Below are positions 7,529 through 51,099 of a stretch of 64,000 bases of DNA, in pieces. The translations under genes were made by a program, and so were the position numbers. A model generated the notes under the pieces. It did no database searches. It was not told the DNA's origin and saw nothing but the letters and a program-made list of their open reading frames with translations. This DNA comes from Tubulanus polymorphus. Lineage: Eukaryota; Animalia; Nemertea. The DNA lies in NCBI RefSeq assembly GCF_964204645.1, contig NC_134030.1:11243947-11307946 (forward strand), in the 5' to 3' direction. Positions within the stretch are counted from its first letter, which is position 1. Every line of letters starts with the position of its first letter.

Positions 7529-7543
7529 CTTTCGACAGCATAT
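7529..7543 (-). CDS. Microexon, 15 nt, phase 1-1 (DMLSK)
   Basis: ctcttcattccag|atatgctgtcgaaag|gtattt. Confidence 0.5.
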
Positions 7544-10500
7544 CTGGAATGAAGAGAAAACTTCTAACTGGTAGAAACTTGTATTTTCAAGAAACCCTTC
7601 GTATTTTCTACTTTTTAATCACGTACTGTCATTGTTTCATTTATTCGTTTTATGTGTACCACTAAGATGTTACTCGTTCTTATTCTGCTAGCAGTTCGGC
7701 GACTTTAGTCGAAAGCGACTAAACTATCCGATTATAAATGTGTCTAAAATCGATCAATTAAATTATTTCTTTGGATCGACTTGAAAAACTTGTTGACGTA
7801 GTTTCCAACCATGTTGTGTAATGGAACGTCGATCGAAAGCTTCGGCACGTACGTTGACAGGTAGAAAACGATTTTTAATTGTTAAATGGTTTAACGATTT
7901 CAGGCACGTCTGCAGCTCTATCTATAACCGAGTCTCAAATCATCCAACCATTTCAAGACATAAAGCCCAACGCACGCGGCAAAACATTTGTTTCCCCGAA
8001 ACAGAAAACACGTTTTTAGTAAAACGTTTTGTCCGCAAACGATAAAACGTTCAACGCACAAGGAACGAAAAACGTTTTCGACTATACAAAATGTTTTTCG
8101 CAAATCAAGCAGTGCTTGTTTTGCGAAAAACGTTTTTTCCTCGCGAAAAACGATTTTCAGTTCGGCGTTTTGTGTTTTTCCTCCCCCGCACACGGCATAA
8201 CAAAAAACATCAAAAACGTTTTTTTTCACGAGGAAAAAACGTTTTTTTCGGTGCCGTGTGCGTTGGGCTTTAAATGCCTCGCAGGGCCTGATACGGCAGC
8301 TTTATACATAGGCTATACTAAATACGGACTGGATGGTTGTCATTAGACCACTTCCTGGTATAGATCATACCGATATTGATGTTCATAAATAGAAATAGGC
8401 GGCTAAATGATATGTACATGAAGGTCAGTTTTTTGACGTAGGCTGCCTGATTCACTTAGATAATGATTCGCCAATGATTCACCCGCTAGCCCTCTTTCAT
8501 TGGACCGCAACTTTTCGAATGAGATTCAATCAAATTTTGAGTTCAATTCAATATTTCACTACCCCGTGTGCTTTCTGTAATCCCTCCGGTCACAATATGT
8601 CAACTTAATGTACACATGGATTCACTTTCATGGAAATGATATGTTGTCCACACCATTTTCCAGTGGCACATTTGAAAAACTAATCATTACACCAGGAATT
8701 AAAGTACCTTTTTTTTCCTGGTCTGTTTTCCGTTTTTCAGTGTCGTTGAGATAAGGGAAATACGATGTAGGATTTGTTTCTAAAATGATAGATAGAATTT
8801 AGATTAAAGTTAACACGTGCAGTGATGAGTAGAATTGATGAAACACATAACGCAGTGAGAAGCACTATTAGCATTAGCATGAACCCCATTGTTTAGATAA
8901 ACGTTTAATCAAATAACAAGTCATCCAGCTAACACCCACTGATATCTTCATACAGATCGTTCTTCTTTGTCTCAACTGCATCATCTATATGAGAAAAAAC
9001 AAAACGTCCATTGATTATATGCAAACTAGCAGTACTTATAGCAATTCTTGAAATCTTATTAATGCGTGCACACCTACCTCCCATTTTGTGGGTCGCTACA
9101 AATAGATACAATAGAGATAGACGAGAACTCGAAATTTTAACATTTCATCAACGGAAAAATGCAATGGAACAATGTATGTAAGTTAGTGGAAATTTCATCT
9201 CCATGATATTTTACAAACAACTATTGCATCAAAACCCCAATATCAATATCATCAAAACATTGACTAAAATGTGTTCAAAATTGAAAAATGAATGTATTCA
9301 GTAGTAACTGCCCAAAATATTCACTAATTTTAGTCACTCAAATGAGTGTGATCTTTGATTTAAAACTGTTCTTATCTAGCAGTTATCAGAGAATGATACG
9401 TTTATTACCTTTGTATTGTGTGACTTTGTTTTCCCATAGATACTCTAAAGAAAGAAAAAGTTAGGTTAATTCCGATATACATGAACTACATTTCGCAACA
9501 TCGGGCTTGCTGATATATACTAGCGCATGCTCTTCTGCGTGGGACTTTAATACTAGCCTTAAGAAGTTGGTTGGCTAAATACAACGAACCTCTCACATAA
9601 TTAGTTCCAATTTTAACCACTAGGGGGCGTAAATTTTGAAAACTCATTCTAACATCCGTTTTTCGCATGTAATGCGGTCTGTTTATTATACAAATCACAA
9701 AACTTGGTATAAGTACATAGACATGTGTGTAATATGCCAAACTGCATGATTAGTTCATACAACTGCCACCAGGGGACCGTGAAAACAACGATTTTTGCAC
9801 CTAGGTCCTTAACCGTTGCCGATAGAATCGCGGTTGAAAAGTGTGGTTAGTAGCCCTGTACAAGACACAATGTATTGAGGTATAGTTTTAAGTAGGAAAC
9901 TCATATGGTTCTCCAGTAGCGCCACCTACAAGTTGCTGGAAATGCATTTTCATTGATATCTACTAAGCGGATAACAAGAGATGGGCGAGTAACGATTGCT
10001 CATCAACATTTTTGCGACCGAAACGAACCGAGCGCTTTGCCAGGCGCCTCCAGCTGGTGGCGCCGCCAATATCTCTTTGTTCTCAGCCAATGACTGTTGA
10101 GTACAAGTTCCTTTCTCTTCTGCATCCCGAGCATGAAAGGTTACGTTTTACCACCCACCATCCCCTTCCTTAGCACCTTTCGAATTGGTGGCATTTTCTG
10201 AGCCCACTTTGGCGTATTAACTCATTAATTAATTAGCTAGGGCGTTTGACTTCGTCTTAATATTACGTAACTCTGTATTATTCATCTCCATAACTAGGTC
10301 AAAACAGCCAGGGCGTTTTGGCCATAATTTTATGATTTTATGTTTATAATATCATTGTCTAAATATTAGTTAATAAGTTTGTAATGGTTTTTTTTTGTAT
10401 ACGTCAAAAACAGCTAGGGCGTTTTTGACATTTCTAATTTTTGTGTTTTGTATATAATAAACGCCAAGCAGCTAGGGCGCTTGGCCTTTTCATCCAAATA

Positions 10501-13500
10501 TGTCTTCGCGTCGTTTCTGTTGAAAAAAAAGGGATTTCTATGAAAATCAAAACTCGTGTACCTGGATATAAGATATAACGAACCCCTCACATAATTAGTT
10601 CCTATTCTAACCACGAGGGGGCGTAAATTTTGAAAACACATTTTAGCATCCGTTGTTCGCGTGTAATTCTGCCATTTTATTATATATATCACAAAACCTA
10701 GTGTGAGTACATATATACATAGGTATAGTATGCTAACCGGCTAAATTAGTTCATACAACGGCCACGAGGGAATAGTAAAACACCGTATCACCTATACTCT
10801 TGAAGTTATTTTCCCTAAACTTGGTACTTTGCATTTAGTAGCCATGGGTCAACATATCTATGATATGGGTTGACCCATGATACGGGCTGACCCCTTGGTA
10901 GCGCTTCACCACAAATAGCGGTACCTAATGAACTGATTTCAGTGACATCTTTTGCAATCTCCCTAGTACGACATTTAACCCAGCAAGGCAGAAACCCGTT
11001 ATCGCTGCTTTGCAGCTATACCTCTTTTTATATTCGTAGATTAAATGTTAAATGCTAGTCGAGTATTAGAAAGGCTATTTCCGATTGTAAAGAATTTGAG
11101 ATAGGCCAAACATACAGCTCCCAACTTTTGATCGAATAATTATGGATTAAACAAGTAACCTCGGGATAACCTGCAAGTTTTACTATGGTCATACGTTCTA
11201 CCTGTAATGCACTTACTTTCGGACAGGCCTCCTAATTCTTTCCGTACATGTCCACTCTGTTCTTTTGCTGTGAAATGATATTTTATAATTCTTTAAACCA
11301 ATCATACACAAATAACGCTTATCTTCGGCACAGTGGTTGAAAAATCCCTACCTTTTTCTGACAGTCTTTTTAAGTCTCGGCCATCTCGGGCATCTGTAAA
11401 CACACGGAATCGTCATCTTAGCAGCTATTGCTTATAATTGAAAGCTTGTAGAATTTCTACTGAATATAGGGCAATTGAACTAGCGGACACTTTTCAGGGT
11501 CTGATACATGTATATATTATAGGAAAAACATTTTATGTTTATTCATTCAAATAAGAATAAATCCCATCAGTTACTTTTGATTAATCCCATCTACTAATGG
11601 CAACCATCTCATCTCACTCTCAATTATCTCAACGGTTCAATCTTTGATTTTCGACGCTACCAAATAAGAGTTTAGTGTAAAGGATTTGCACTTACCTAGA
11701 TATTCGATTACATGCATTACGCCTTTATCACCTAAAAGGAATTTTAAAATTGATGATTACGCTTGCTACATTCGCAAACCCACTAAATACTAGCGGTCAA
11801 TTCGCCGTACTTATCACGGATATGTTCAAAGAGTGACTCATGAGTCTCCATCCTCCTCGTAAGGGATTCGAACCTGATGGTATCGAGACTCACCACGGTA
11901 TGAAACCCTGCCACACAAGACCGAGTGCGCAGCTACATTCGCAGCTTGGATGATGTCATTAGTAGCAAAATAGAAATCCCATTTTATTTTAGCCCGAGTT
12001 TTCCCATTCATACTTCTTCCGTTAAATTTGACTCGGCGAGGGATTATAGAACGAGAATCTGATTGGTGCCGCAAGTTTTCGCACGGTAAACCTGCGCATG
12101 TGCCTGCACACCCGGTCTAGTGTGCAGGGCTTCATGCCGTGAGTCCCGCGATACCATCATGTTCGAATCCCTTCAGGGGAATGACGTTTTCAACCATTTT
12201 GATAAGACTTGAAAATCCGCATTTTAGTTATGTTTAAGCATATACATATCGGGTAAGATATGCTAGTTTGACAACAAATACAATGCTTTCACCTACAATA
12301 TGACTTTTAATCAGGTCACGGAATAACGCGAAGTTTTAGTTATCTACGCTAGCAATTTTTGGAATTTTGATAAACATATATTTAGGTTTGACTGTATATC
12401 CAAGATCTGGTTTGATGCGTCAAATATTGTATTTCAAGGAGCACAATATAATTCCTGTAGTTTTGATTGATGGATGGATTTGACGGTTAAAACATGAAAT
12501 TCTGACGGGTAGATATGATTTTTCATTTTGACAGTTTATATTCTATGACATTCAAGATCAAGCCACTAATTAATACAAGGCGAGGTTTTCCAAAATTGAT
12601 ATAGGACAAAAGAAAAAGATCGACACTTAAAAGTCTATTCAAATTTATGTATGCCTATGTAAATCTAACAATGATTACCTGTAAGACGATCCTTAATCAG
12701 TTCACTGAGCAGCTTTCCTGTGGAAAATTAATTTATTTCTATGTCACTATAAGTCAGTATATCGATACATATATAATACAAAAATAAACAGAATAGGGGA
12801 AGAATTCGTGCAAAAATCTCATAGAAATTGCATTCTGACTCTTAAATTCATTCCAGGTCCCAGTTATAAACATGAATGCCTAACGAACCAACATCATGAA
12901 ATTAATCGTGTTGTAGTAACTAAACATTACGCCCAGTAAGTGCAGATTGTAAAATTATAGTTTTTTTCGCACTTACTCAAACAAGCATCGTCGCCAATCA
13001 GTCGAGTTCGTCCACCGATAGCTGGAATGACAATCTTAGCAATGAAATATTATAATAAGCAAGTGGTTAAGTATTCAGCTTGCAGATACGATGTTACTGC
13101 AATTACACTCACTCGTCCTAATCTATATTTTAGCCTAAAACATGCATTATTCCTAAAGAGTGGCCACATCAGAATCAATAAAAGCAAAGATATTGTCAAT
13201 TTAAATGTGATGCAAAGGATCGGATAGTCTTTTATCATTGAAATACTTAAATATAGTTCTATAAAAAGTCTGACTAGATTCGAAAAAGTTGTTTACGTGA
13301 CATTAATATCGTCATCGACCGGGCCCCTGTCAAATGGATCTCTGAGAAAAAAATTTGTTACCGAAATAAAATCAGATTAAGTCACATTTTTAGGATACAA
13401 GACATCCTTTTGGATGCGTATGTATGTTTTACCTAATAACGAGGAAGAACTCCTTAATACATCACGAATAAAAAAGTAGGGGTCCAGGGACACCATGCCC

Positions 13501-16500
13501 ACTTGGGAAGTGGTTCTAAATGCTCAACAATGTAACAATTTCAATATTCAACGCCCCCTGGTGACCATACACAAAAACCAATGACCATGAAACTCACCAC
13601 AATCATAGAACATGTCAGCAGCTACGATTTTTTAATTGATTGTGATAACAAAATATGCCTCGTTACCATTTAATATGGAAATACTAAGTTATTCTACTAT
13701 TCAACGCCCCTGGTGATCATATAGAAAAACTAATGTCCTTAAAACTCGCAACAATCATAGATGATGTCATGAGCTACAACTTTCCAGTTGATTATGGTTA
13801 CAAAATATGCATAGGTACGAATATAATAAAGAAATGCTAAGATATTGTATTATTCAACGCCCCTGGTGGCCATACACGAAATCCAATTACCTTGAAACTC
13901 ACCACAATCATAGAACACGTTATGAGCTACAACTTTTTAATTGATTGTTGAAGCAAAATACGCTTAGGTATCAACATAATGTGGAAAAACTTTTTCCCAC
14001 TTACGAATGAGTACTGGTGACACCAAGATGGCCGCCAATTGCGTCATAATTGGCTGATGAAAAATACCTGTCTCAGGTATAAAACATCCCTTTCCAAAGA
14101 ATACCCATCACAAATTGCAATGAGAAATGGCAAACCAGTAGTAAGCTACAGGACTCAGAATTCGGGCCAAAATTAACATTTTGGGCACCAAAAAGGTCAT
14201 AGGACGGCCATCTTGAGTCCGATCGACCCAATTTTTGTTATGCTGATGGGCCATGGGGGGATTCACATATACCCGAAAGATCAAGGTAATTGATCAAAGC
14301 GTCTTCAAAATTTTCCTCAAAAGGTTCAAAAATATGTAAAAAGTGCTGATTCAGCGAACAACAATGGCTGCCAGTCGAACATCTTGATTCTGACAGGGCC
14401 AGTTTTTGGGCTGAAGATGTGTCTAGGGTAGACACAAATATCAAGACGTTACCTAGAAGCGTCTTCAAAACTTCCCAAAATAACTTGATTCCGTCTACGG
14501 ACGGACGGACGACGGACGAAAAGTGAACGCAATAGCCCGCTGGGACTAAAGTCCCAAGTGGGCTAATAAAGTCTAAGTCACGCAATATAAAAAGAAACCG
14601 AACAAACATGGACGGGTTAAAATCTATTTTAAATCCGTTTTCTGTTTTCTTCTAAAAACCCATTCAGGTCGATATTTTAACTGCTCGCTATTTATTTGAT
14701 TGCGGCGCTAACACATTTTACCTAATTTTTCTTCATCAGTCAGAGATTTGCGTTCAAGAATCTTGCGGCATTGCTGGAGATAACTTGCATCGATACTTCC
14801 ACTGATTTCATCATAATTCTTGTCAACGAAATAACCTGTGGTGAACACAAAACATATGAAATCCGACAATGATGATTATCTGATTAGATTACAAGCAAGC
14901 ATGATACTTACCAACGATCAATTAATATGCTTATGAAGACGTGATTACTCCCCAGATTCATCGTTATTTATACTGGATCACAGTACAGTCAAATTACCAA
15001 ATTTAAAAACTATATAAGTTTTTTCTGGCCTTCTCAGGTTTTTACGTAATTTTATTCAGTTTAGCTAAAATCTGTATTCAATTACTCGATTTTTCCGTGG
15101 CAAATGTAACCACTTACAGAAAATAAATTTCAAAATTCTAACAATACTTAGACGGTAAATGAAATGGATAAATCAAGTCTCAGAAATGTTTTGAGATTTT
15201 CATATATAACTGGAAAATGACCCAAGGAAATTGAGAGTTACATACTGTAATCAACTTTTGCATAATGGCGAAGATGTGACTGGTTTCAGCATAGAAGACA
15301 ATGATGAAACTTACCCGCTGTTTCTGATGTTGCTAAAAAAATAGATTAGATATTGTTAACGTTCCGATACTACATCGGTTTTATGGTATAAACAGCAATG
15401 CTTCGAATGTTTATCTGTGTTAGAAATATGAATCTCAGCAATATAAATTCAGGCTCCATGGAATGGATGAAACGTGTCTTTTCAAATATTCAAGTTCGGC
15501 GGAAAGTCTTACAATTAAGTAGTAAAAGGAAAATACGGCAATTTCGATTTTTACCTTTAAGAAACAACAGACTTATATCAACCAACGTATCTACAATATA
15601 AGAATCGTATAATTAGAATCGATACAAAAGGACCTCCAGGAACTGACGCTAAATTCAATACGTATTTACCATCGTCCGATGAGTAGAGTTCTTCTTTCAC
15701 TTGCCTTAGAATGGCAATAACTGAATAAGAAGAATATTCTCACTAAAAAGCTTTTAAAAGAAAAGGATTGATTTGGAAAAAAAGAAAAGTAGTTGTACAC
15801 ATTTTCTGTGTTCCTTTTGGTTGGCTACCCTTGAGCGCAACTCAGCACACCAGAAAAACGATGGCGGAGGCGATCTGCATATTCAATTTATGTCATGTTG
15901 TGTTCTTTGTCTGTCAGGGGTGGATTTAGAGGATGGTCACGGGGTCCGGACCCCTACTTTCCCATTGAGGTTGCCCTATTCATCGAGGCAAAGATAGTGA
16001 AAACATGCCAATTTGACACTTATCTTTTTGGAAATTGTATATTTTTTTATTTATTTCGTCAAAAATATCTAACACCAATGGCGGGACCCCGTTAAAGTCT
16101 ATCCCAGTGGTTATGATCGCGGCATTTCCACTCTCGAAGAGCCAGTATCAACAACAATTTAATTGATACTGACAGCTGTAAGTGGTCAAACTCACCATGA
16201 GCATCGCTGACTCGCTGGACCCCAGCTGCTTGTTATATAGTAACGGGCAAGAGTGAATAAAGAGCAAAACTTTTCGAAGCTTACACTAAGAAAATGAAGA
16301 AATTAGCAAGGAAAAATTAGTTTGAAGTCTTGTTGCATTCAAGAGTGAATATTTTCCGAGGATACCAAAGTCAATGTTTACATTAGAAAGTGTCAGAACT
16401 AATTTTCAAGTTGAAACATTATATTAGGACTGTGTGTAAGCAAAATAGCAACACAGAACGTACGACTCATGAGATGATAATCAAATCCACAAATAGTCAT

Positions 16501-19500: not shown

Positions 19501-22500
19501 AGGCTCAGCCTATGGCTGGCCCAATAACTAGTCAAACAGTCAAACGTAGTTTAGAATGTATTACTTACACTTTTCACACTGCTGATTCGTTTCATCTTCC
19601 TCTAAAATATGAGAAATCAAATTCAGAAATTTACGCATTGGCATAAATTGATATGTTATGAAAGGGCAGCTCACCTATGTCAATTTTGACACTTGTACAC
19701 CGGATAGCCTTATAATCTGAAAAAAATAAAATTTGTTCTCAGCGCGTTCATGCAAACTTCAGCATCGACCATCACATCGAATTATTGTCGGATATATAAA
19801 GACATCATGCCAAAAAAGCCACATCTTTTAACAATTTTCTGACATTTGCCATTTAGTTGGCGGGGAAACATGTTAAAAACCAGCAATGTCAACGAGATGG
19901 TCACCTAGAAGAAAGGTGACCGATGGTCACCTAGAAGAAGGGTGACCATCGTTATGTTCATGCAATGCACGAATCCGTCGTCCACGAAAATTCGGAATTC
20001 CGCGACGACTATTTGCTCGGTTCGATTCATGCGTGTATGTGCTAGCAATCATTTCATAAACTTTCATAAATCAAGTGTTATTTGTATGCCGTGACATGCC
20101 AAATTCAGAATTCTCCTCGTAGATGCATCGCCCTTAATCGTGATATCATTGATCTATATCATTATTAATAACGGGTACAACAGCCCCGTGTAACTTAGTG
20201 TGTTACAGTGGTTGCAGGTAGTGGTTACAGTTTTCGTGACATTTTGCACGCTGATAAGGCAGCTGCATGACCATTTCGTTAACAATTAAGTGACCCCCAT
20301 TAAACTACTAAACTATATTCCAAGCATCAGCTGCAACGGCTGTGTGGTTATCACAGCAATAGCACATGCATCCAGTTACTGCGGCTAAGCGGGTCTCGAT
20401 TGACATAAAAGAGATCAGATGTTTGCCTCCCGGTTGGGGAATATTTTTCATTACTAGAATGTCACCGAAGACGACTGATGCCCCCAAATCAGGTGAGTTT
20501 ACAATACACCGTGAGCGTATGTCGATAGATTTATGAAAGCAGGAAATAAAAAATACAAACAGCTTGACCTTGACCATACGTCGATACAAACCCTCATTAC
20601 CAGATACTGTTGATGTTGTCTTTAACCCTTCAGATTTCTTTTTTGTTTTCCGTTTCTTCCTTGCAGGATTATCATCTACAATGTATATTTATACATTACG
20701 TATACAAGAGCAAAATGTCATTGGTACAGTTTTCGGGGATGAGATGATTTTAGGCCAAATGTATAATATCCGTATAAATAGACGCGTCTATGAATCTTTT
20801 GGTGAAATATTGAGAATATTAAAAGCTACACATTGGCGGATCTAGGGTGTTACTCGAGGGGCCAGAGCCCCTCCCCTCGAAGTTCGGAACGTTTTTCTTT
20901 TACTCGACATTTTCCCAAATACTACCGTGTCCAGGCTTGAGAGTGGTGTATACTTGTAATGATCTACTATTTCTTCTTACCAAAATTACATGTAGTTCTA
21001 AAATGCAGGAAATTGTTCCAATTTGCACATGGAAGCAAGGCTTAACTTTCCGCCTACGGCACTCACAAAATCTGCGCACATTGTGAGTGTTATATAAATA
21101 TCTAACAGGGCCCCCTAGACAAGATAGCCCTAAATCAGCCCTAAACGAACAAATGAATATAGCAGGTTTTTAGAATCAAAATTATTGATAACCCTGGCTG
21201 TCAATTTGATGCATTCGCCTGAACTTACTTTCTACTTTCTCGGTTGAAGTACTAAAGCCTGCAAGAAGCAAAACATCCATATCAAAGATTACGTATATCA
21301 TCATTTCATGATGAGATAATGTTCATTCTTTGTTTATTTACACATAAATTCTCAACTGTGCTTTAGAAATAACTGGGCATTCAGATAAAATTTCTCAAAT
21401 ATTAGGCTTTTATATTGTCATAAAGGTGCCTCAAAATAAAGGCTGGTTAAGACCTGGGCGTTTTCCGGTTAAAGGAGAGCAAATCCGACTTACAAACTCT
21501 CTACAAGCCTTTTATCAGATTTATACATTATGCTATTTCGCAGTTGGAGTATGATCCAATGCATTAGAAGGCATTGGAAATTTTTCCACAATCTGCATAG
21601 CAGTAATAACGGATTTTCTGCATTGATTAACTTGAAGTTCTTGGAAGCAATAGAATCCATATTGAAATGATTTGTCTAAATTGTAGTCAGTGGAATTCAA
21701 TCAGTGCCGCCTAAAATGCACTGCCACTCACGCAACGCTGGCAAATATGATTTTTAACAAAACAAAGGGAATTTATAGCTATGAACTGTTAAAATCTGAA
21801 TGGTTTCGATACGGGGGTGATTTTTCTGTAACACGAGAGCAAAACTTCTTTCATGAATTGAATCTGTCCGAATCGTTGTCAGGCCATCAAGCCACACCCT
21901 TAAATCAGATCCTGTCATCTACCCATAACGGCAAAACCATGCAGCGTACCGTTTAGTCCGGGGTAATGTATACGTTTACGGCTCGAATTTGCTGTTTTAA
22001 CGTTGGTTCATGAAAATTAAAAATGATGGAGTATTTGTAGATTTAAGTAATCTTAAGGTAAATCTAATGATTTTAATCGGAATATTCCGTAAGGAACATT
22101 TCAGGTAAGTCTAATGGCCGGGTCGAAAGCCCGCATAGTTTAATTGGAATCAATTAACCTTTATTGGATTGCATTGTCATCCATACGAACGCAAATACGA
22201 ATTCATTTTCACTGCACACATTACCATGATACATAGAGTGAAAACACGTATTACAATAAGTTAATATTTACAAAACAACAATTGCGATAAGAAATTAAGG
22301 AATAAAAACACATCAAATCATTAACAAAACATACATTGACTATATTTACAATGTGTTAAACCATTGGAGGAATTTATACACATTTAAGCCTGCTTTAATT
22401 ATTCGAGCCAATCAGACCGTTGGCATTTTGAAAATATCAAGGGTATTAAAGGTATTCTATTATGATAGTTTGTAATATTCAAATAGTTTATCAAGTAAAG

Positions 22501-25500
22501 TACAGTCAAAGAGAAAATGGGATCCATCACCTTGAATATTTCAATATATCCTGTCATCTCTATCTAAATGAAGGTCTGAAAATGTATCCACAGGTAAACT
22601 ATAAGAACCGATCCTAAATTCATATAAACTAGTAAGGAAGTCCATCATCGAGTTCAATAATATCTGGCCTAATATCATTTTCATATTGCCTAAAATTAGT
22701 GTTTATCGGATTAGTATTAACGGTCATGGAAACGCAGTTTTATTCCTTTTGAAGAAGAATTACTGTTTTTCAAACAATTTCGAAATATATAACAACCAAG
22801 GACTCTAAAAATTTAATCCTTAAAAAACAAATCTTAAGATATTTTATGAAGAATTGAGTTAAATTTAGATTGCTATCCAGATACTGATTTTACCAAAGAA
22901 ATTAATTATCATTTCAACAACACACAGCCATTCTATGGCGACAATTCGTTAAGATTTGCTTGCAGTAATGTGGAATAAAAATAATTCTTGTAAATAGTCA
23001 AAGGAATTCTTTCGAAGGTCGGAAAACCCTATTTCAACTTCTGCGGCGCTCTGTTCACTGTGATACGGATGTTCAACGGCACTGATATGCTTTCATTAGT
23101 TTGTATTATTGGCCCGGCCTATACTCCTTACTATATTAACCGTGTATCAGTAATCTCTAAATAGGGGAATCAATTACTAAGGGCTCAGAGTCGTCTATGA
23201 GACGAGGTACCCATTCTTTCCTGGGTGAAGAGAGACAATCGCAGTCGCTTGTCCCGTATCGTAAGGGGATGGTACCCCCCTAGCTTCTCGGAGTTGAACG
23301 TTCTAACTACTCACCCTCGCCACTCAACAACTTACTTGCCGAGTGATGAAACTGTGGTTTAAAATCTTCGGGTTTGTTGTATATAGCCTTAGCTTTCCGC
23401 AGAAGTATGTCGTCCAAAGCTATAACGAAGTGACAAAGCCAATAATGAAGTTACTTCCAAGATTAACATCATCGCTGATTAAAATGGCCCCAGGGATATT
23501 TGACAAAATCAAATATCAAACGGGTCGTGCTTGTCAAATACGTTTCTTTGTGTTCGGCCTTTATATTCTACTTACCTCTACCTGAATCATTCAACTTGCG
23601 ATCCCAATACTTATACGGTATTTTCCAGTATTTGTCTGAAATTCAGATGATCTATTGTTCATCAAGGTTAGGCCGAAATTACTACTTTTGATACAAACTA
23701 GGGATCCATGGACACCATGTCCACTTGGGAAGTGGTTTGAAACGCTCGACAATCTAACAGATGCAATATGGAACGTCACCTGGTGAACATACACTGAAAC
23801 CAATGGCCTAGAAACTCACATTAATCAAACCTGTCATGAGCCACAATTTTGCACTATATTGTGGTTACAATATATGCCAAAGTTTCAATATAATATGGAA
23901 ATAAGTTATTCTGCTTTTCTTAATTTAAAAAACAACTTTATTTACTTAACTTTATTTAAACAAGGAAAATGGTACGTGTATGGTTACAGCTAGCCGAGAA
24001 TTTAAGCGAATGTTTTAAGCAAACATACACAAATCTTTTAATACATATTCATTTTTCTGTTGCATCAAAGCAAGAATTTGAAAGGACTTGGATCAGTAAA
24101 AAAATATTAGGGGATAAGGCGCATTCTTACATCGCTAAAATAATTACAGTAAAAAAGATAATGATATTCATCACCGACACCATTGTTACATAGGGTACAA
24201 AAATACGTTCCTCTCTATCCGTCTTTTCCCATCTCCCAGTTTCCACCGGAAACTTGTGGTTGCTACTTCTGAATTTAGTCAGGTTTATAATAAGGTTATC
24301 TGATATAATTTTAGATATTAGGTATGGTTCTAGCACTAGATCCTGCATGAATAAACCGTAATATGAGCCTTTAGAAGAGATGAACCAATAAAACAACTTC
24401 TCTATTCTTGCGAAAATTATTCCTTTAATCTCTGGCGAAGGGATAATTTTAGCCAGTTTTGATTTGGAAATAGTTGGCTATCCCAAATTTTGTTAAAACC
24501 AACAGTATATAACATGTTTTTGATGTTTTGCAACCATTTACAATTGTGTAAGCCATAAAGAGCTTGATAGATTGCCCCTGATATATTACCTTGACGGGTT
24601 GTAATAAGAGTTGACCAATAATTAATAATTCTGGATTTGACTAGTCTTCCTGATTCACCGTTGAGTATGTATAAAGGAGTACTTTTTCTAAGGCGTAAAA
24701 CCCGACGTAAACATTCAGTATGGACACGCTCAATGATGTCTAGGTAGGAGAATCCCCAGATTTCGCAACCGTTCAGCAAGATTGGAACTATGGTTTCATC
24801 GAACATTCTAAACTGGCAATCGAATGGTAAATCTAGTGAATATATTCTCATATACAAGACATTCAACGCTTTTTTGCTTGGTCAATTAACAGTTTCTTGC
24901 CTTCTAGGCAGCTTCGATTTTGTTTGAATTTGTTACCTAAAAATTTATAGTCAACTACTCTATCTACATTTTGATTACCCATATGAAAGTGAAAGTTTCC
25001 TATACCTCTTGTTCCAAAAATGCCACCTGGTGACTATATACAAAAACCAATGATCTTGAAACTCACCACAATAATAGAATATAACATGAGCTACAATTTT
25101 GCAATTGATCGTGGTAACGAAGTAGGTAACAATATAATACATGTCGCGTGCCCTCAGAACCGATCGATATACCAGCCCAGCCGCTAGGACACGACATTCA
25201 ATAAAAAGACGGAAAGGCGAGGTCCAAAAGGTCACCTTGCACACCTCGTTCAAATCGCCCAGGCAAAGGCCCTGGAGGGAAAATTTTGACGGGCTTGTTA
25301 AAATCCTATTCAAGAACGTGCAGGACAAAATTAGTTTTGAAAAGTAAACAAGATTTAAAAAAGAATCGAAAATACAAAGATTACTATATGCGTAGCTCCA
25401 AGTTGCGCACGGATAGGCTCCTTGAGTTGAATATGAAGACAATATTGATAGAAATACCCACTGGTCATAAATTCAGAGTTACACCAACGGTCGTGTAGTT

Positions 25501-40500: not shown

Positions 40501-43500
40501 ATTATTCAATGAACCGGACTCGAACGCAACTAGTGAACACAGTTCTGATATAGTTGAATCAACACCAGTTATCGTCCAACAAACGTCAGATCAAACCCAA
40601 CCGCCCGTAACTGAGGCGTGTTCAGCTGCCAAATCACCTAAATCGCCCGAGTATCTAATAATCGGCGATTCGAATTGCCACCGCCTTATGTTCTAATTTG
40701 TCATTTTGGGGACAAATGACAAATCTCTTCAGAAAGAGGATCACGATCAAGTAATCCTTGATATGACGAAAGCTGCGAATATCCTTCTCAGCCAATTCCC
40801 TTCCGCAAATATAAACATATCCAGTATCTTGCCTCGGAAGGGAAAATTAAAACCGTTATGCATTTGAATGAAGTTAAATCCCTCGTAAACAGATACTTAA
40901 AAAAACTTTGTGATAACGAGAGCAGGCTTCATTACATATATAATGATAAGAAATTCTGCCCAGATGGATCAGCGGTACGATCGATGTTCGACTCTACTGA
41001 TACCAAGGGTGTACATATCGGTATTGATGGATGTTTTCGGCATAAATGCTGAAGCGAGCAAAAGAGGCTACGAAGTCAGTCATCATCTTCGGGTAGTCCG
41101 AATAGCGTTCAGGCTTCTAAAATCCTTATTACCGGTGATTCACCGGTAACAGTTGCATAATTTCTATGTTAACCTACATCTCTGAATATATTATATTACA
41201 ATATATTATTATATTATATTATAATTTACTATAATGGACTTTTCTACAAACGTTAACAATATCTCACAGAACTGTTTAGATTGTAAATATTATAGTGATA
41301 ATAATTTTCCTTTTCGTAAGGATACGTTTTCAATTTTATCCAATAATGTACGAAGCATGAGCAAATATTTTGACGCTTTAACTCATTATCTGGATATTTA
41401 AAAACTCAAATTCTCAGTTATTGGTCTTTCTGAGACTTGGGCTAGCCAAAATAACAACAACAGCAACATGTACCATCTGAATGAATACAAAAAGTATTTT
41501 CAAATGAAGGGGAAATGGCAAAAGAGGAGGTGGGGTATCATTATATTTGAAAAATAATTTAGTTTTTAACCTGCGTTCGGATTTAAGTAGTGAAGATGAG
41601 TTAACGTTTGAGTCTTTATTTGTAGAAATTAATTATAAAAAGCATAAAAACACTATTGTTGGAATTATATATAGACCACCTGGATCAGGAATGCAAAGTT
41701 TTCAAGATGAATTTAATAAACTCTTAGACTACCACTTAACACTTCGATTAAAATTAACGGAATTAATATCGATCACGTCCATAGCACAAACTTTTTGGGT
41801 ATAAATATTGACGATAAATTATCATGGATTAATCACATCAATGATGTTCAACGTAAAGTATCTAGGAGTATCAGCATGTTAAATAGATTAAAACGATTTT
41901 TACCGCAGAAAACTCTTATTCAATTATATTTCAGTTTAGTGGAACCGGATCTCAGTTATTGCAACATAGTTTGGGCTCAAAATTTCAATGTTTACTTAAA
42001 TTCCCTATTGCTACTTCAAAAGCGAATAATATCAAATTCAAATTATTTAAAACACACTGAGCCACTTTTTAAAAGATTGAAAATACTAAGAATCAGAGAA
42101 ATGAACAAATTACAGTTAGGATGCATTATGTTTAATTATAACAAATCCATGCTACCTGATTTTTTTAATAATTATTTTCAATTTCGATATGAAATTCACA
42201 ATTATCGAACTCGTAGCTTAAACAGTATGGAAATCCCTCGAATTCAAACTCGAAGAAGTAAGTTTTCAGTAAAGACTTCTGTAACTTTGAAATTCACTCG
42301 ATCCAATTTTATAGGATTGAACAGTATCTACGTTTTTAAAAATAATTTCAAACATCATCTGTTAAGAGGTCAATAGTTATGTTTAATCTCTGTTTAAATG
42401 TATATTGATCTGGATTTATTGCGTCATTTTTTCTCTGCCTTGTCATGATTTTCATGCGTGTGCCTGTCCAAGTGTGATAGTTTGGTGAAAGGTTGCTTGC
42501 ATGTGCGTGTGTGATTTCCATGGGTGTCAGGGCCATGCTTTATGGTTACAAGTTTTTAACTTCTCCTGGTATCCATCGACTTATATAACATTACCCTGTA
42601 ATTTTCTAATGTAATTTAATTCGTAAATAAAGAATAATAATAATTCTATGTATTGGTATTTCAATTTACTACAATTCCCATCATCCTTGAATGGCTTTGC
42701 AGAAAACCCGTCATCGCTGCTTTGATCTACGGAAAATAGCTATATTTTCTTAATGATTTACTCCTGGAATTAAAAGGCGATCCAAACTGTATTAACGTAC
42801 TGGCCTACCAGATGACCTATGTCTAATTGCAAACTCTGAGGCTGCGCTACAATATCTAATTGACAAAATAAGGTCTTGGTGTGGCAAATGGCTGTTATCC
42901 ATAAATGTCGATAAAACGCAAATTGTGCACTTTAGAAAAATTAGAAAAGCATGTACGAAATTCCACTTTACATGGCATGATAATGAGATATGTAAAGTAG
43001 ACTGTTACAAATATCTTGGCGTTTATTTGGACTTTCATCTAAAATGTAACACTCATTTTGAACATTTGTCCACCTCGGCGGTAATTATAGGACGGTCTTC
43101 TACTCTCCGGAATGTAGGCTACGAGCCGTTTAAAATTTTATATGAAAGTGGTGTCGATACAATTCTCAGTTACGGTGCAGAGATTTGGAGTGCAAAAAAC
43201 CCGCATAATATTGAAAAAGTGCAGTACAGAGCTGGCAGATATTTTCTGGGCCTTAACCCTTTGACTCCTTTACCAGCACTTCTTGGTTGGCTCCCATGTA
43301 AATTCAAAAGAATCAGAAACCTAGTTCGATTCTGGAATATATTAATTGATATGGATGATAACCGACTAACCAAAAATGTTCGTTGTTCTTATAAGATGTT
43401 GCTTAAAATCTAAATAACTGGTCTAGTGATTTTCATAAAATCTGTGTAGCAATGCAAATCGTTGACAAATTTGATAATCGTCAAATTATTGCATTGAATG

Positions 43501-46500: not shown

Positions 46501-49500
46501 AGCTACGAGCCCTCGATGCAAGGTTCCCGTTCACAGTATTCATCCGCATAGCATGGTAAAATGAATTCAATTGAACGAATTATTGATAAAATATTATCCA
46601 ACATCTTCTACATATTATTGCGATCAACTTTTATCAACAATCAGCCTAATTCAATGTTAATACAAAGATACCGGAACTATTTTTGTAGCGTATTTAACCT
46701 CACTCGGCGGATCGTTCGTTAAATCAATGACTGTAAAAACGGTGTGCATTTGTTCGCGGTAAACATACATGACACCACGCCGACATGCTAATAATAGCTT
46801 TCTGTTTCATCAAGAGCTAATGTTATGTTGTTGGTTTGGGCTCTCCACTAGTGTTGTGGTTCTCCAACACTGTATCTGTCTTTTAGGCCGGATCTTCAGT
46901 CCACGGTCTTGACTTCTACAATCGCCAGTATATAACCCTAACGACTTCTTAGATTATATATTCGTTTATTATCTCTTTGTCTAGATGTATACAATCTCTT
47001 CCTGGAGCTCTGTTCTCTCAAAAGCCTCCCTCTATTCTCTCTAGCCTCTCAAAACCTCTAAGCTTTCTTAAACCTTTAATATTATTTTCTCTTTAGTAAC
47101 GTGTGCAGGCCCTCCTCCACATATGGCTTGGAATTCATGGATTGTGACGTATTCATACGTCACAACATTCCTCCAATCCATGTATGGGTGGTGACGTATC
47201 TGCACACGTCACAATTATCTAAAAATACCTTTTTGCACTTATCAGCATATTAGGTTTCCTACGTAGACACATACGTCACTTCCAGACTTGTTTATTTATA
47301 TTACTTCTATTTATGTTTATGTATGACGTACTTATCCACTATCCACGCAGGTTGTCTGGCAACTGCAACACTGGCCATGAACTCCAGCTTCTGTACATTA
47401 CTTGTTGGTATAGTTTAACCGCTGATAACTAAAACCTACTAATGTTCCCTGAAAGCTTTTTGATATAATTCATGAAAGCCCAATAATATATTTCCTGAAA
47501 GTCTCCATATTAATAAAATGGGAAATTTATGTACATATTAATGAACAAAATATATCTTTAATTGCACGTATATGCCTACCTTCCTTCTCAAGATCTGCCT
47601 TGTCACGGTTTTTTATGGCTTCCCGTAGTCTTATGAACACACGTTCAGTTGTGTTAGCTATTTTCAAGATAAAATGCAATTTTCATTGACATTAAGCCGT
47701 AGTCAAAATTCTGTAATTGGCATCAAAGCTGGTTATAGCGTTACCTTCAGATTCTTCGTTCTTAAACATTTGTAAGCAATGATTGTAAAAACGGTCCATC
47801 AACTTTTCGTCACTTTCCTGCTCGCCTAGAATAAATATGATCAATATACAGCTGCAAAGTAGCCTTTTTATTATTTTCATTATCATTCTTTATTTGCGAA
47901 TTAAATTACATAAGAAAATTACGGGTGATAATATGGTCCAGTAAGTAAGAAAAGTAAAAAATTTACTTTCCGTGATAACATAACCAGACGAAACTAAATA
48001 CATCACGATCTGAGATCTGACTGATCAAAAAAAGTATCTCTAATTAACCGTAAATCATGTATTTGTCATAAACTTTGTTTATATATTTCACATATAAACC
48101 GCATATGGTGCCATTCATGATGTTATCCCTGACAATCAACACGAGCACTTGCGCGCGTTTTACAACGCGTTTTAGAACTACCACGCGAAAAACTGATGTC
48201 ACGTTTACGCGTGCATTATGTCTACGTGCATTTGTCGAATTGAACCTATCACTGCTTTAATATGTATCATAATCAGTCATCTGATCCCCATCCCTCTTTT
48301 GGCACAAACATTAAAGTCATGTATCGTTAGAAACATTTCTATTTTCCGATGGTGTTTATTTTATTTTTCTCGGCTGCAACAATCGGATACAGTTGCAGTT
48401 TGAAAGATAAACGTCACTTTTAGGAAGACGCCTCAAAAAATTGGTAATTTTGTGTTATTGATTGTAACTTTTTCATGTTTTCAGATACAATGTGGAATTT
48501 TTCATTGAAGATAGAGTTTTATCTGAAGATTTTGTTGATACAGCATTCGTAAATATATCTTCATAGAAACGCGTGTGGCCACCGGTTGAGTCAAGCGCAA
48601 AGCGTGCGCGAGTAGTTGACCGTCGATTTTCTGCATACGCTGGTTAAGCCAATTCCATGGCAATTTTTAAAATTTTAAAAAGAAAGAATTTTCTTTATTT
48701 TGGCGCGCCAAAACGAAATTTCAGAGAAAATTGGACGTTTTTTTCGTTTTGGCGTTCTGGCGTTCTGGCGCCCTCGTTTACATACCAGGAATTTTACGCT
48801 ATGGCCCTTATCAGCAGCCACCATAGTTCATAGTGTTATCGAATCATCCATTGCGCAGTAGGCCTATACAGAATTCATATTTCTCTAAAACTAAACATAG
48901 TGCATGAAATTGCGCTCGTTTGTTGCTACTGACTTTAATTCCTGATTTTATAAGTTCATTTTCCCTAATTTGCGGACCTTCTTAAAAAATGTCGCGGCGG
49001 AAAATATGCTCACTGTTCGAGGTCCTTTAAGTTCAAGTTCCTTTAGAACCCGGTCAATCGTCCTCGGCCAATCAGATGGCCGTATTCGCCGTTTCTATTT
49101 CTGCCAATTAGTAAGAACCCGGTTCTATTTCATGTAGAAATTGATCACGTGACCAGCCGCTTCTCTGGAAACGACCGGAGCGCGTGGGATTCGAGGCCAC
49201 TGACACCGTAATCAAAGCCTTCGGCTTTACCACCTGAGCCACGAAGGATTGATATTTCATGAGCTATAGTTTTGGTTGGGTATACACCAAATCATTGTGT
49301 CTATTATCTGCCACATGAATGTCATTTTATAATGTTCTTAATAAACATGAAACATATATTATTGATTCATTAACTACATTCAAATCTTTTATTGATAACT
49401 ATCCTGTAGATTAATCAATTTAATCACCTAACCATAACTACATTGAATAACAATGACTAAATTTGATTATTTTTTAATTATTTAATGATAACTATATTTA

Positions 49501-50798
49501 TTCTTATTTTTTCATACTTATGCTAATATTTTTATGATAAGTATAATTGTTCGGTTATTCTATCATGATTATGTTTAGTTTGATCACCTAGTCATAACTA
49601 TCTTAAAACAATATCAAAATTATAAATATATCAGGGATTAATTCAATCAAGTTTAATCAGCTGCTAATTCTTTCAGTAGGTCTACAGTTGATATTGAATA
49701 CAGCTTTAAAGAGTACGAAATGGGGATATACATTTCAACTAAATTATTAGGCTATAATAATATGATTTATTTTATGACATTCAAGTTTGATTTCCTAATC
49801 AAAACCATATTATGGACTCATTTAATCAATTCTAATCACAGTATCATTTGTCCATAAATCATCATGGAAAATTCTTCGAGCAATGATATTTTTTCAGTAG
49901 GCGTTAATCTTAAACTGGGTTAAGTCAAGGTATATTAAATGGGGACTTACATTTCAACGGTAAGGCTGGTGCGATTGGCCGGGTTCTAAGCCGGCTAGAA
50001 ACCTCGGTCACATTTCTACGCGAACAGAACGCGTCGCGCTAGCGCGCTCGACGGTTCTATTTCCCGTCGAAATGTGACTTCGGTTTCTAACCTACACATG
50101 GAGTCCAAATAATAAAGCCATAAGTAGCTGGTGGCCGGTTGGACCGGGGTACCGGTGTACGACACGGATTTTAAAGCTTTGTACCAGCACCGATTTTTGC
50201 GGTCGATTTCACGATCAGCGTTTTTAAGCACTCGATTTTCCGATCGATATTTGCGATGGACCCCGCTATCGATTTGGCGATTCGATTTACAAGATGGTGG
50301 AGCTTGCTGGTAGTTGATAAAGATACAATCTTTTTTCTCTAACTTGCATGTTATGTCATGTGATGAAACCATCGTCGTGATACAGACAGAACAACTCGCA
50401 CCCAAATCAGATAGGGCCTACTTGGATGGTTGACTAACTAACTAATGTTGACTAACTTGGATGTTTGACAAAACAATCTTTTGACGTGATTATGTATATT
50501 CGATCCTTCGTAATTCGTACTTCGCGTCGGACTAATTTTGTCGGGCCCGGTTAGTTCCATTAGTCATTGTGAAATAATGCAATGTGAAGTGCTTCTGTGA
50601 AACGAGCCCTACGAGATAATAAACTACTGGTGGGTACAGTAATCACGGGAGTGCTGTTAAAAATCATATCTTACCTTCGTTAGGTTGCTTCCCACAAAAT
50701 TTCTGTTTCCAGTAATCCCTTGCTGCTTTCCAGCAGCAGCAACAGCAACAAAACAAACAACTTAGCCAGTAAAAACATATTTCTTTGAATGTTGCCAT
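7529..50798 (-). CDS. Predicted multi-exon host gene: N-terminal cysteine string followed by an array of symmetric phase-1 small exons (unknown protein, ~340 aa assembled, 3' end not located)
   Basis: Kozak gccATGG at 50798. Nineteen AG/GT-bounded exons splice into one open frame: MATFKEICFYWLSCLFCCCCCCWKAARDYWKQKFCGKQPNE/GEQESDEKLMDRFYNHCLQMFKNEESE/ANTTERVFIRLREAIKNRDKADLEKE/DKYWKIPYKYWDRKLNDSGR/GFSTSTEKVE/NDNPARKKRKTKKKSEGLKTTSTVS/EEDETNQQCEK/FIAILRQVKEELYSSDD/ATSETA/GYFVDKNYDEISGSIDASYLQQCRKILERKSLTDEEKL/AIGGRTRLIGDDACL/RKLLSELIKDRLT/DARDGRDLKRLSEK/AKEQSGHVRKELGGLSE/KYLWENKVTQYK/ATHKMG/DDAVETKKNDLYEDI/KTNPTSYFPYLNDTEKRKTDQEKK/DMLSK. Manual prediction; additional exons may have been missed. 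Confidence 0.7.
7961..8272. mobile_element. MITE (TA- or TWA-flanked; Tc1/mariner- or PIF/Harbinger-type)
   Basis: Terminal inverted repeats taaagcccaacgcacgcggca ... gtgccgtgtgcgttgggcttta; interior rich in aaaacgtttt palindromes. Confidence 0.8.
8708..8779 (-). CDS. Exon, 72 nt, phase 1-1 (KTNPTSYFPYLNDTEKRKTDQEKK)
   Basis: cattttag|aaacaaatcc...gaaaaaaaag|gtactt; open in phase 1. Confidence 0.6.
8940..8984 (-). CDS. Exon, 45 nt, phase 1-1 (DDAVETKKNDLYEDI)
   Basis: ttttctcatatag|atgatgcag...gatatca|gtgggt. Confidence 0.65.
9078..9095 (-). CDS. Microexon, 18 nt, phase 1-1 (ATHKMG)
   Basis: tatttgtag|cgacccacaaaatgggag|gtaggt. Confidence 0.65.
9409..9444 (-). CDS. Microexon, 36 nt, phase 1-1 (KYLWENKVTQYK)
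   Basis: tttttctttctttag|agtatct...tacaaag|gtaata. Confidence 0.7.
9575..11020 (+). mobile_element. Helentron/DINE-like non-autonomous element remnant with a ~210-bp internal direct repeat
   Basis: 9580-9790 is repeated at 10575-10780. Ends with gcagaaacccgttatcgctgctttgcagctat, the same subTIR+hairpin end seen at 37430 and 42700. Confidence 0.6.
11217..11267 (-). CDS. Exon, 51 nt, phase 1-1 (AKEQSGHVRKELGGLSE)
   Basis: catttcacag|caaaag...tccgaaa|gtaagt. Confidence 0.75.
11352..11393 (-). CDS. Exon, 42 nt, phase 1-1 (DARDGRDLKRLSEK)
   Basis: gtgtttacag|atgccc...gaaaaag|gtaggg; 84-nt intron to the next exon. Confidence 0.7.
11850..12185. repeat. Foldback repeat whose two arms each carry a tRNA-like B-box segment
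   Basis: 11855-11930 (gggattcgaacctgatggtatcg..ccctgccacacaagaccgagtg) is an imperfect reverse complement of 12110-12180 (cccggtctagtgtgcagggc..gataccatcatgttcgaatccc). Confidence 0.7.
12679..12717 (-). CDS. Exon, 39 nt, phase 1-1 (RKLLSELIKDRLT)
   Basis: ttttccacag|gaaagc...cttacag|gtaatc. Confidence 0.7.
12977..13021 (-). CDS. Exon, 45 nt, phase 1-1 (AIGGRTRLIGDDACL)
   Basis: gtcattccag|ctatcg...tgtttga|gtaagt. Confidence 0.7.
13476..14566 (-). mobile_element. Non-autonomous Helentron (HINE/DINE-1-like), family A, copy 1
   Basis: Terminal palindrome tagcccgctgggact..agtcccaagtgggcta next to a (GGAC)n microsatellite; three ~153-bp internal tandem units (tattcaacgcccc at ~13545, 13698, 13851); ggggtccagggacacc hairpin at the other end; A/T-rich insertion site. 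Further copies at 55906, 58565, 23699, 25015 and 46360. Confidence 0.8.
14722..14835 (-). CDS. Exon, 114 nt, phase 1-1 (GYFVDKNYDEISGSIDASYLQQCRKILERKSLTDEEKL)
   Basis: gttcaccacag|gttattt...aaattag|gtaaaa; open across 38 codons. Confidence 0.75.
15315..15332 (-). CDS. Microexon, 18 nt, phase 1-1 (ATSETA)
   Basis: ctatttttttag|caacatcagaaacagcgg|gtaagt. Confidence 0.75.
15670..15720 (-). CDS. Exon, 51 nt, phase 1-1 (FIAILRQVKEELYSSDD)
   Basis: ttcttcttattcag|ttattg...gacgatg|gtaaat. Confidence 0.75.
16093..16814. mobile_element. Non-autonomous DNA transposon with 30-bp perfect TIRs, nested in an older MITE (~15915-16855)
   Basis: taaagtctatcccagtggttatgatcgcgg ... ccgcgatcataaccactgggatagacttta. 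Host MITE ends: caggggtggatttag / ctagatccgtcagtg. Confidence 0.8.
18685..19207. repeat. Inverted copy of the repeat at 5240-5697
   Basis: Reverse-complement match over ~400 bp. Confidence 0.85.
19569..19601 (-). CDS. Microexon, 33 nt, phase 1-1 (EEDETNQQCEK)
   Basis: ctcatattttag|aggaag...gaaaagt|gtaagt. Confidence 0.75.
20601..20675 (-). CDS. Exon, 75 nt, phase 1-1 (NDNPARKKRKTKKKSEGLKTTSTVS), polybasic/NLS-like
   Basis: acattgtag|atgataat...gtatctg|gtaatg. Confidence 0.7.
21229..21258 (-). CDS. Microexon, 30 nt, phase 1-1 (GFSTSTEKVE)
   Basis: tttgcttcttgcag|gctttag...gtagaaa|gtaagt. Confidence 0.75.
23105..23345 (-). mobile_element. Degenerate SINE (tRNA-derived type)
   Basis: Minus strand contains gggacaagcgac..ctcttcacccagg..aatgggtacc, resembling the conserved central box of many invertebrate SINE2 families. 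The head is degraded. Confidence 0.45.
23576..23635 (-). CDS. Exon, 60 nt, phase 1-1 (DKYWKIPYKYWDRKLNDSGR)
   Basis: gaatttcag|acaaatac...ggtagag|gtaagt. Confidence 0.75.
23699..23915 (-). repeat. Helentron family A fragment
   Basis: tagggatccatggacaccatgtccacttgggaagtgg matches 13477 onward. Confidence 0.7.
23940..24980 (-). mobile_element. 5'-truncated LINE 3' fragment (RT C-terminal region, RTEX-like)
   Basis: ORFs 24417-24866 (PILLNGCEIWG, LRKSTP..GESGR) and 24127-24396 (KFRSSNHKFPVETGRW). Confidence 0.85.
25141..27712 (+). mobile_element. LINE 5' half: ORF1 remnant, APE and RT N-terminus; interrupted at ~26715-27430 and cut at 27712 by nested insertions
   Basis: RGG-tailed ORF1 remnant ending ~25608; KIATWNISG, CLTETH, GGVG, CGDFNAR, LPDH (APE); TPGIDNIPNEVL, NYRGIALLS, and by frameshift NGLLSDCQNGFRKGR (RT). 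Confidence 0.85.
27905..28591 (+). CDS. ORF1 of the Penelope-like element: Arg-rich region + SGNH/GDSL esterase-like domain (C-terminus damaged)
   Basis: Block I ILVIGDSN, block II ESFPG, block III ISVGINN. A VHYW remnant, possibly block V, lies in another frame at 28572-28583. Confidence 0.75.
   Translation: MSPGRHQPEWRQHQEVRRHREVRRRRLETRRRRRRERRPHQPAVRCRLSVLFQALRLITGHQGAYCQREVRRQHRDRRRPRKFCRHPNTGRKKQDWSLPPTRRPILVIGDSNLSNITSSRRPDDVQIESFPGCKMAHLADLIDAVPERRDRPDTVIISVGINNRDNNFEATTRKTTQRLINAAVKKYQHSFVHFVQLNTTREHQQFARKFNELLENHDDVTAGPLLVS
28639..30942 (+). pseudogene. Penelope RT-GIY-YIG polyprotein, disrupted
   Basis: VVNL..LS...LLRKGLTYCPTP N-terminus. TAA at 29029-29031, frameshift near 30028, probable deletion near 30175, TAA at 30646-30648. 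Natural stop after PQGMNVP. Confidence 0.9.
31143..31648. mobile_element. Foldback MITE with ~200-bp imperfect arms
   Basis: ctactgtctgtcacac...gcatacgctcgcgtaatgctgaaaaa is mirrored by tttttcagcattacgcgagcgtatgc...gtgtgacagacagtag. Confidence 0.85.
31797..37466 (+). mobile_element. Non-autonomous Helentron family B, unit 1 (5' hairpin triplicated; internal cargo/insertions)
   Basis: 5' tagggttttctg..cagaaaacccta palindrome present three times (31797-31950); 3' subTIR cagaaaaccc plus hairpin gctgcttggcagc at 37431-37460. Confidence 0.7.
34074..34406. repeat. Three ~110-bp tandem units
   Basis: ataccattttaagtacg..gactgtacggtgat.tccacaggttaaccg repeated three times; a partial inverted copy lies at ~34590-34645. 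Confidence 0.85.
39140..39771. repeat. ~45-bp minisatellite with (ACCGAC)-rich tracts and a ~92-bp perfect inverted duplication
   Basis: cccctcgatcccagcca..agggtaatcca units at 39175-39460; 39367-39459 is the reverse complement of 39680-39771. Confidence 0.85.
39835..42643 (+). mobile_element. L2/CR1/Crack-type LINE with zinc-knuckle + SGNH ORF1; RT core deleted
   Basis: CCHC-like knuckles (CRCCWDTDHSYFRC, CFKCKLADHLAADC, CFYCQTEG); IIGDSN / LGTND / GVHI esterase blocks; APE (NNVRS, LSETW, GGGV, IYRPP) joined directly to the RT C-terminus (FLGINIDDKLSW, YCNIVW); AATAAA + (TAA)n tail. Confidence 0.88.
42740..45069 (+). mobile_element. LINE 3' half (RT C-terminus and tail), probably the continuation of 25141-27712; split by a Merlin insertion
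   Basis: FLNDL..VLAY(A)DD remnant, KYLGVYLD, YGAEIW, KPKLRTY; after the insertion AQLRSGILPLSIEVG..RICQLC..ESEMH..C. Tail aataaaaataaaaatacaaaaaatacaaatac. Confidence 0.85.
43626..44528 (-). mobile_element. Merlin (IS1595/ISXO2-like) non-autonomous derivative, copy 1
   Basis: 29-bp imperfect TIRs ggcccaagtcggatatagcatagtatagt / actatactatgcaataccctacttgagcc; perfect 8-bp TSD actaaatt (43618-43625, 44529-44536); transposase N-terminal remnant CSHC..TSIRAGSFFSKSKM. Confidence 0.9.
45325..45706 (+). mobile_element. Short LINE 3'-end fragment
   Basis: Remnant peptide YEQER..LF...FIEQCWSKR; 3' UTR similar to 44950-45040 (gtgactt.taagcc..aataaaa); (ATAC)-like tail. Confidence 0.55.
47347..47421 (-). 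CDS. Possible exon, 75 nt, phase 1-1 (AVKLYQQVMYRSWSSWPVLQLPDNL)
   Basis: Acceptor tttagttatcag; open in phase 1; donor gtggat is weak. Confidence 0.3.
47580..47657 (-). CDS. Exon, 78 nt, phase 1-1 (ANTTERVFIRLREAIKNRDKADLEKE)
   Basis: ttatcttgaaaatag|ctaacac...gaaggaag|gtaggc. Confidence 0.65.
47745..47825 (-). CDS. Exon, 81 nt, phase 1-1 (GEQESDEKLMDRFYNHCLQMFKNEESE)
   Basis: atttattctag|gcgagc...tctgaag|gtaacg; 87-nt intron to the next exon. Confidence 0.7.
49183..49247 (-). repeat. tRNA-like SINE head/pseudogene within a repeat
   Basis: Minus strand: A-box tggctcaggtgg and degenerate B-box ctcgaatccc; no intact cloverleaf. Confidence 0.4.
50675..50798 (-). CDS. First coding exon with cysteine string (MATFKEICFYWLSCLFCCCCCCWKAARDYWKQKFCGKQPNE)
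   Basis: Acceptor ttattttcag 12 nt upstream (exon edge 50810); Kozak gccATGG; 124 nt open, ending in phase 1 at a strong aag|gtaaga donor. Confidence 0.75.
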
Positions 50799-51099
50799 GG
50801 CATTCAATCCCTGAAAATAATTCGTCGATTATTCTATTTCGTCTCAAAAAAGTGGGATCCGGGATATTGCCATACCTACGAAATAAGTATCGTATAGGTT
50901 TTTCAAGGAAGTATCTTATAGATGGTTGCCTTAAACCTTTACTGGTTCAATTTTTTGTTTTGAAAACCTTGCGGCGTGAAGTTAACTTTTCGGCTAAAAG
51001 GGATCTCACAGTTGCATTGCAACCTGTATTACTCGACCTATTACGCTTCAACCGTGAAACAATTTCTCAACAGAAATTGGATATGTATTACATTCTTAT

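Follow-up and report, generated by a model that had tools for sequence, protein, structure and literature searches.

A real, transcribed gene with small exons that are all symmetric lies on the minus strand of a 64-kb stretch of the Tubulanus polymorphus genome (C6:11243947-11307946, hereafter the window; coordinates without a prefix are window positions). The gene, which a first-pass annotation made by eye had reported as hidden and unannotated, is already catalogued as RefSeq LOC141907606, an uncharacterized protein (XP_074653398.1-XP_074653403.1) whose name gives no function. No paper on LOC141907606 or on such an architecture was found in the literature. LOC141907606 is best explained as a lineage-restricted orphan of T. 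polymorphus for which no paralogue was detected.

Gene structure and annotation

The six RefSeq accessions represent four protein isoforms of LOC141907606. The 114-nt exon, used as the sole query, recovered a 607-aa protein of this gene with 100% identity, and genome mapping showed that the RefSeq proteins align exactly to the exons. The gene spans 70.5 kb, of which ~20 kb lies beyond the window start, and its full-length products measure 602-610 aa. In the 602-aa form, 37 coding exons run from the ATG at 50798 to the coding end at C6:11224243. The internal exons measure 18-114 nt (median 42 nt), and every one of the 35 is a multiple of three in phase 1-1 according to the RefSeq mapping, as had been claimed for the smaller set recognised by eye. 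There are 36 phase-1 introns in a row, a run with a probability of ~1e-17 if the frequency of phase 1 is taken as 0.35. The median intron measures 265 nt, and two giant introns measure 23.9 kb and 19.8 kb.

The exon with the ATG (50798, context GCCATGG) and the cysteine string occupies 50675-50810 and ends in phase 1; a 12-nt coding exon upstream of the window (C6:11309903-11309914, minus strand) is added in three isoforms. All the following exons lie on the minus strand and were placed by RefSeq mapping. Two phase 1-1 exons of 81 nt (47745-47825) and 78 nt (47580-47657) precede the 23.9-kb intron, after which come exons of 60 nt (23576-23635), 84 nt (23336-23419, also found in the splice scan described below), 30 nt (21229-21258), 84 or 75 nt (20592-20675, with alternative donors at 20592 and 20601), 42 nt (19675-19716, also found in the splice scan), 33 nt (19569-19601), 51 nt (15670-15720), 36 nt (15555-15590) and 18 nt (15315-15332), again in phase 1-1. 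The largest internal exon (114 nt, 14722-14835) is additionally marked by a loose end in the RNA. Spliced RNA agrees with RefSeq for the exons of 45 nt (12977-13021), 39 nt (12679-12717), 36 nt (11696-11731), 42 nt (11352-11393), 51 nt (11217-11267), 36 nt (9409-9444), 45 nt (8940-8984), 72 nt (8708-8779) and 48 nt (7496-7543), and the 18-nt exon at 9078-9095 was placed by RefSeq, its inclusion in RNA being deduced from contig depth. The 51-nt exon at 7223-7273, placed by RefSeq and a 29-nt loose end in the RNA, precedes the 19.8-kb intron that reaches to C6:11231413, and 12 further symmetric exons and the terminal exon follow outside the window, to C6:11224243.

Among the 18 internal exons listed in the first-pass annotation, 17 were placed correctly, and the last was mis-sized (7543-7496 is 48 nt, not 15 nt). 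The exon given as 75 nt has that length in one isoform and is 84 nt in three of the four. The set was incomplete within its own span, where four exons were missed (23419-23336, 19716-19675, 15590-15555 and 11731-11696), and 14 more were missed past it; the gene goes on with 7273-7223 and 13 further exons, and RefSeq gives a product of 602 aa in place of the ~340 aa proposed. Because the 36-nt exon 15590-15555 intervenes, the annotation does not contain the junction 15670>15332. The linkage of exon 1 (50675) to the 23-kb cluster holds, both belonging to one gene in the RefSeq models.

The location of the exons on the minus strand was also beyond chance in an unbiased splice-site scan of both strands over 7.4-26 kb (splice score of at least 7). 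On the minus strand, 15 of 17 candidate exons were multiples of three and 14 were open in phase 1-1, whereas on the plus strand one of six candidates was a multiple of three and none was open. Selection by eye does not account for a pattern with this contrast between strands.

Transcript evidence and splicing

Four sequencing runs cover the stretch, and one of them (run X4), whose kind is not on record, was treated as RNA from its splicing behaviour. The RNA data consist of this run, as assembled contigs in which rare variants are dropped, amounting to 5.95 kb over 7150-13100. Contigs with depths of 1,726 and 1,894 over this interval jump GT-AG introns, with listed joints at 12977>12717, 12679>11731, 11696>11393, 11352>11267, 11217>9444, 8940>8779, 8708>7543 and 7496>7273. 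At 13023, a loose end continues with the final bases of the 114-nt exon; another, at 7223, matches an exon that lies 19.8 kb away, outside the window. The contigs of run X4 (depth about 1,400-1,900) traverse exons 14835-7223 in order and then reach the next exon beyond the window. A bridging contig with a depth of about 1,440 contributes exactly 46.0 letters to its bin, which equals 28 plus 18 and indicates that the 18-nt exon 9095-9078, whose own joints are absent from the listing, is probably in the main RNA path. Over the tested stretch, the main transcript path takes in every exon, the 18-nt one by this deduction from depth.

No exon-skipping joint occurs among the joints listed for run X4 over 7150-13100 (49 more joints lie outside this listing), and no cassette-exon skip occurs among the four RefSeq proteins, a source of isoforms that under-reports skipping. 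The RefSeq isoforms differ by the 12-nt upstream coding exon, by a 9-nt donor shift (75/84 nt) and by a 65-nt frameshifting exon. The last (C6:11231528-11231592, minus strand, 12.4 kb left of the window) truncates RefSeq isoform X4 at 509 aa and is a possible poison exon. Low-depth unspliced contigs cross short introns at 8957-9438 and 12870-13100 in runs X2-X4, and those of run X4 (depth 27 and 18) suggest pre-mRNA or minor intron retention.

Protein features and the N-terminal anchor

The cysteine-string N-terminus and the charged character reported for the shorter product are both present in the 602-aa form, which contains 37% charged residues (D/E/K/R). Strong hydrophobicity is confined to aa 7-23 (mean hydropathy 1.99, compared with 0.94 for the best segment elsewhere), a segment that holds six consecutive cysteines and is followed by basic residues. 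Nine of the 17 cysteines fall within the first 40 aa, and the 84/75-nt exon encodes a cluster of basic residues at aa 158-166. By inspection and hydropathy, the translated frame has no signal peptide, the N-terminus being free of a small-residue cleavage motif. Lipid anchoring of the protein by its cysteine string is plausible. A single-sequence AlphaFold model was mostly helical at low confidence (pLDDT 40); in this low-confidence model, 13 of 36 exon junctions fall in predicted loops compared with a background of 32%, i.e. they are not enriched there. Fold assignment from the single-sequence models was abandoned, their quality being too poor.

The alternative frame of exon 1 (50716-50778, minus strand) looks like a textbook leucine-rich signal peptide. 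In simulation, the leucine run arose in the alternative frame with P = 1.0 given the cysteine peptide (39% when a methionine was required as well), whereas random codings of the alternative-frame peptide yielded the six-cysteine run in only 0.3% of cases (P = 0.003). This asymmetry makes the cysteine frame likely to be the selected one; the genetic code itself explains the signal-peptide look-alike, which was rejected for that reason. The context of the cysteine-frame ATG (50798) is also better than that of the alternative ATG (50778).

The helix pattern of aa 241-332, a stretch that begins in the 114-nt exon, resembles by eye that of a CARD. With these residues, Foldseek returned four CARD chains among 50 weak rows (E 4-9). 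The Pfam CARD profile gave no score on the LOC141907606 protein, and CARD chains were absent from the rows at Z of at least 2 on structural realignment (VIA) to the single-sequence model of aa 241-332, which is poor (pLDDT 51, N-terminal third unfolded). The CARD-like stretch is an unconfirmed lead.

Searches for related sequences

The absence of a recognisable domain, reported earlier for the shorter product, extends to the complete protein, for which Pfam returned no domain either at full length or exon by exon. A full-length homologue search, in which proteins of 331-1053 aa were covered, recovered LOC141907606 alone; a search with aa 236-335 returned nothing, ESM Atlas gave no usable match, and Rfam gave none. 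Neither an orthologue nor a second allele was found. At the exon level, no paralogue was detected across the genome by a search that is insensitive and misses even identical short exons, and neither exon duplication nor a nearby paralogue was detected in 244 kb. The exons are also unlike one another, with one of 666 exon pairs similar at p<=0.005 compared with 3.3 expected. Two sets of candidates were set aside: two bacterial MucBP repeat proteins, the other matches of an exhaustive search with one 37-aa exon as query, had repeat-summed scores, and the weak own-genome matches L036 and L037 sit in unrelated long ORFs.

Genomic surroundings

Both giant introns appear to be inflated by retroelements. 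A Penelope-like retroelement (27713-31070, plus strand; reverse transcriptase ORF 29116-30111) lies within the 23.9-kb intron, and LINE-type endonuclease/reverse transcriptase ORFs (242-2347, plus strand) lie within the 19.8-kb intron. Reverse transcriptase remnants were observed at 24417-24866 (minus strand), 41795-42376, 42925-43413 and 50976-51410. A 153-bp tandem unit common to 13545-13980 and 55972-56263 is part of a dispersed repeat. Further out, two clusters of intronless ORFs lie 69-81 kb left (L010-L012) and 20-30 kb right (L019-L020) of the window; by eye, these ORFs look like those of Polinton/Maverick elements, with integrase-, ATPase-, capsid- and polymerase-like members. On the plus strand, 25.5-27.1 kb left of the window, lies a long exon that looks like part of an LDLa/LRR-type GPCR gene, and this GPCR-like gene is convergent with the 3' end of LOC141907606.

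Comparison with known small-exon and anchored proteins

Schistosoma micro-exon genes (MEGs) consist mainly of symmetric exons of at most 36 nt, which make up as much as 75% of the coding sequence, and encode families of small secreted or surface proteins with signal peptides and exon-skipping variants (PMC4015677, PMC8293314). LOC141907606 resembles them in its long run of small symmetric exons, its restriction to one lineage and its lack of homologues. It differs in that 14 of its 35 internal exons are 36 nt or shorter, accounting for 23% of the coding sequence, and in that its product is a probably cytosolic protein of 602 aa with no signal peptide and no detected paralogue. Skipping variants are known in the MEGs, whereas none is present among the four RefSeq proteins or the listed joints of LOC141907606. 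Elevated dN/dS is a further trait of the MEGs. LOC141907606 is not a MEG, symmetry being the one defining MEG character seen in it.

In chicken BG proteins, cytoplasmic tails of heptad repeats are encoded by 21-nt exons behind exons for Ig-V and transmembrane segments (PMC5938342). BG/butyrophilin tails and LOC141907606 are alike in having a helical cytoplasmic region encoded by many small in-frame exons after a membrane anchor, both region and anchor being putative in LOC141907606, but LOC141907606 has no 21-nt exon, no detectable exon repeat and no Ig domain, and its protein begins at the cysteine-string exon or four codons upstream. The T. polymorphus genome itself appears to contain Ig/NLR receptors with micro-exons, in which, as in LOC141907606, an array of small phase-1 exons would follow a membrane anchor (a putative one in LOC141907606); this gene differs from them in having no ectodomain and no NACHT, and the exon-level search of low sensitivity detected no similarity to them. 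Proteins anchored by a cysteine string include DNAJC5/CSP and the RZ-family RGS proteins, in which consecutive cysteines stand among hydrophobic residues close to one end of the protein. LOC141907606 shares such a terminal hydrophobic cysteine run and has neither a J nor an RGS domain by Pfam; it is at most similar in anchor to DNAJC5 and the RGS proteins and is no member of their families.

Discussion

We consider it probable, with moderate confidence, that LOC141907606 encodes a membrane-tethered helical cytosolic scaffold or adaptor with a palmitoylated cysteine string, that its splicing is mostly constitutive and that its exon symmetry serves exon turnover. S-palmitoylation is an established route for attaching soluble proteins to membranes (PMC3010063). 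The 602-aa product would be a highly charged, mostly helical cytosolic protein, which the N-terminal hydrophobic cysteine string would tether to a membrane through S-palmitoylation, aided by the basic residues behind it; held there, the protein may act as a scaffold or adaptor. Exon symmetry would be a trace of how the gene grew. Only phase-1 exons that are multiples of three can be gained or lost in frame behind a phase-1 anchor exon, which would give evolutionary modularity and not a combinatorial mRNA repertoire.

The combinatorial alternative was that of the first-pass annotation, in which many combinations of skipped exons would yield a varied repertoire as in MEGs. All 35 internal exons could indeed be skipped in frame, and the alternative donor and the frameshifting exon represent some alternative splicing; however, no skip isoform is present in RefSeq or among the RNA joints listed, the exons are larger than those of MEGs, and a product that is probably intracellular would have no exposure for recognition or evasion. 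We regard this system as improbable. For a secreted product, translation would have to start at the alternative-frame ATG (50778), and a GC donor following 50724 or 50727 would have to provide a phase-1 join to exon 2. The alternative-frame peptide does look like a signal peptide, and GC sites of the right phase are present, but the leucine run follows automatically from the cysteine peptide, the RefSeq donor leads that frame into a stop, the alternative ATG stands in a weak context, the GC donors are weak too, and the cysteine string is present in all RefSeq isoforms, so that secretion is very unlikely. The notion that the exons were picked from intronic noise draws on the fact that they were chosen for symmetry and that one boundary was wrong; against the strand control, the independent RefSeq models and above all the spliced RNA contigs, which refute it, its probability is negligible.

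A special case of the favoured scaffold or adaptor deserves separate mention, although we hold it to be rather unlikely. LOC141907606 could be an ectodomain-less member or partner of the Ig/NLR receptors of this genome, that is, a free-standing lipid-anchored counterpart of their phase-1 micro-exon tails, in which aa 241-332 possibly form a diverged CARD/death fold and which would serve in immune signalling as an adaptor or decoy. The CARD-like helix pattern seen by eye and the four weak Foldseek chains point in this direction. The Pfam CARD profile fails to score the protein and the CARD chains are lost at Z of at least 2 after realignment to the poor model; moreover, exon-level searches of low sensitivity gave no match at the receptor cluster or genome-wide, the protein has no Ig or NACHT domain by Pfam, and no NACHT-like long reading frame was recognised in the 150 kb downstream. 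Still more speculative, and in our estimate quite improbable, is a lipid-anchored ectodomain-less immune adaptor that would be built of phase-1 cassettes, with a death fold spread over five small exons and with tissue-specific or challenge-specific skipping.

The architecture of this already annotated gene is unusual. LOC141907606 represents a stand-alone, probably intracellular case of a long array of small symmetric exons. The exons are not repeats of one another and are apparently included together, which separates the architecture from the idea of MEG-like combinatorial splicing and indicates that exon symmetry can last without obvious skipping. The gene therefore offers a useful control in deciding between splicing variation and evolutionary exon turnover as the role of such arrays.
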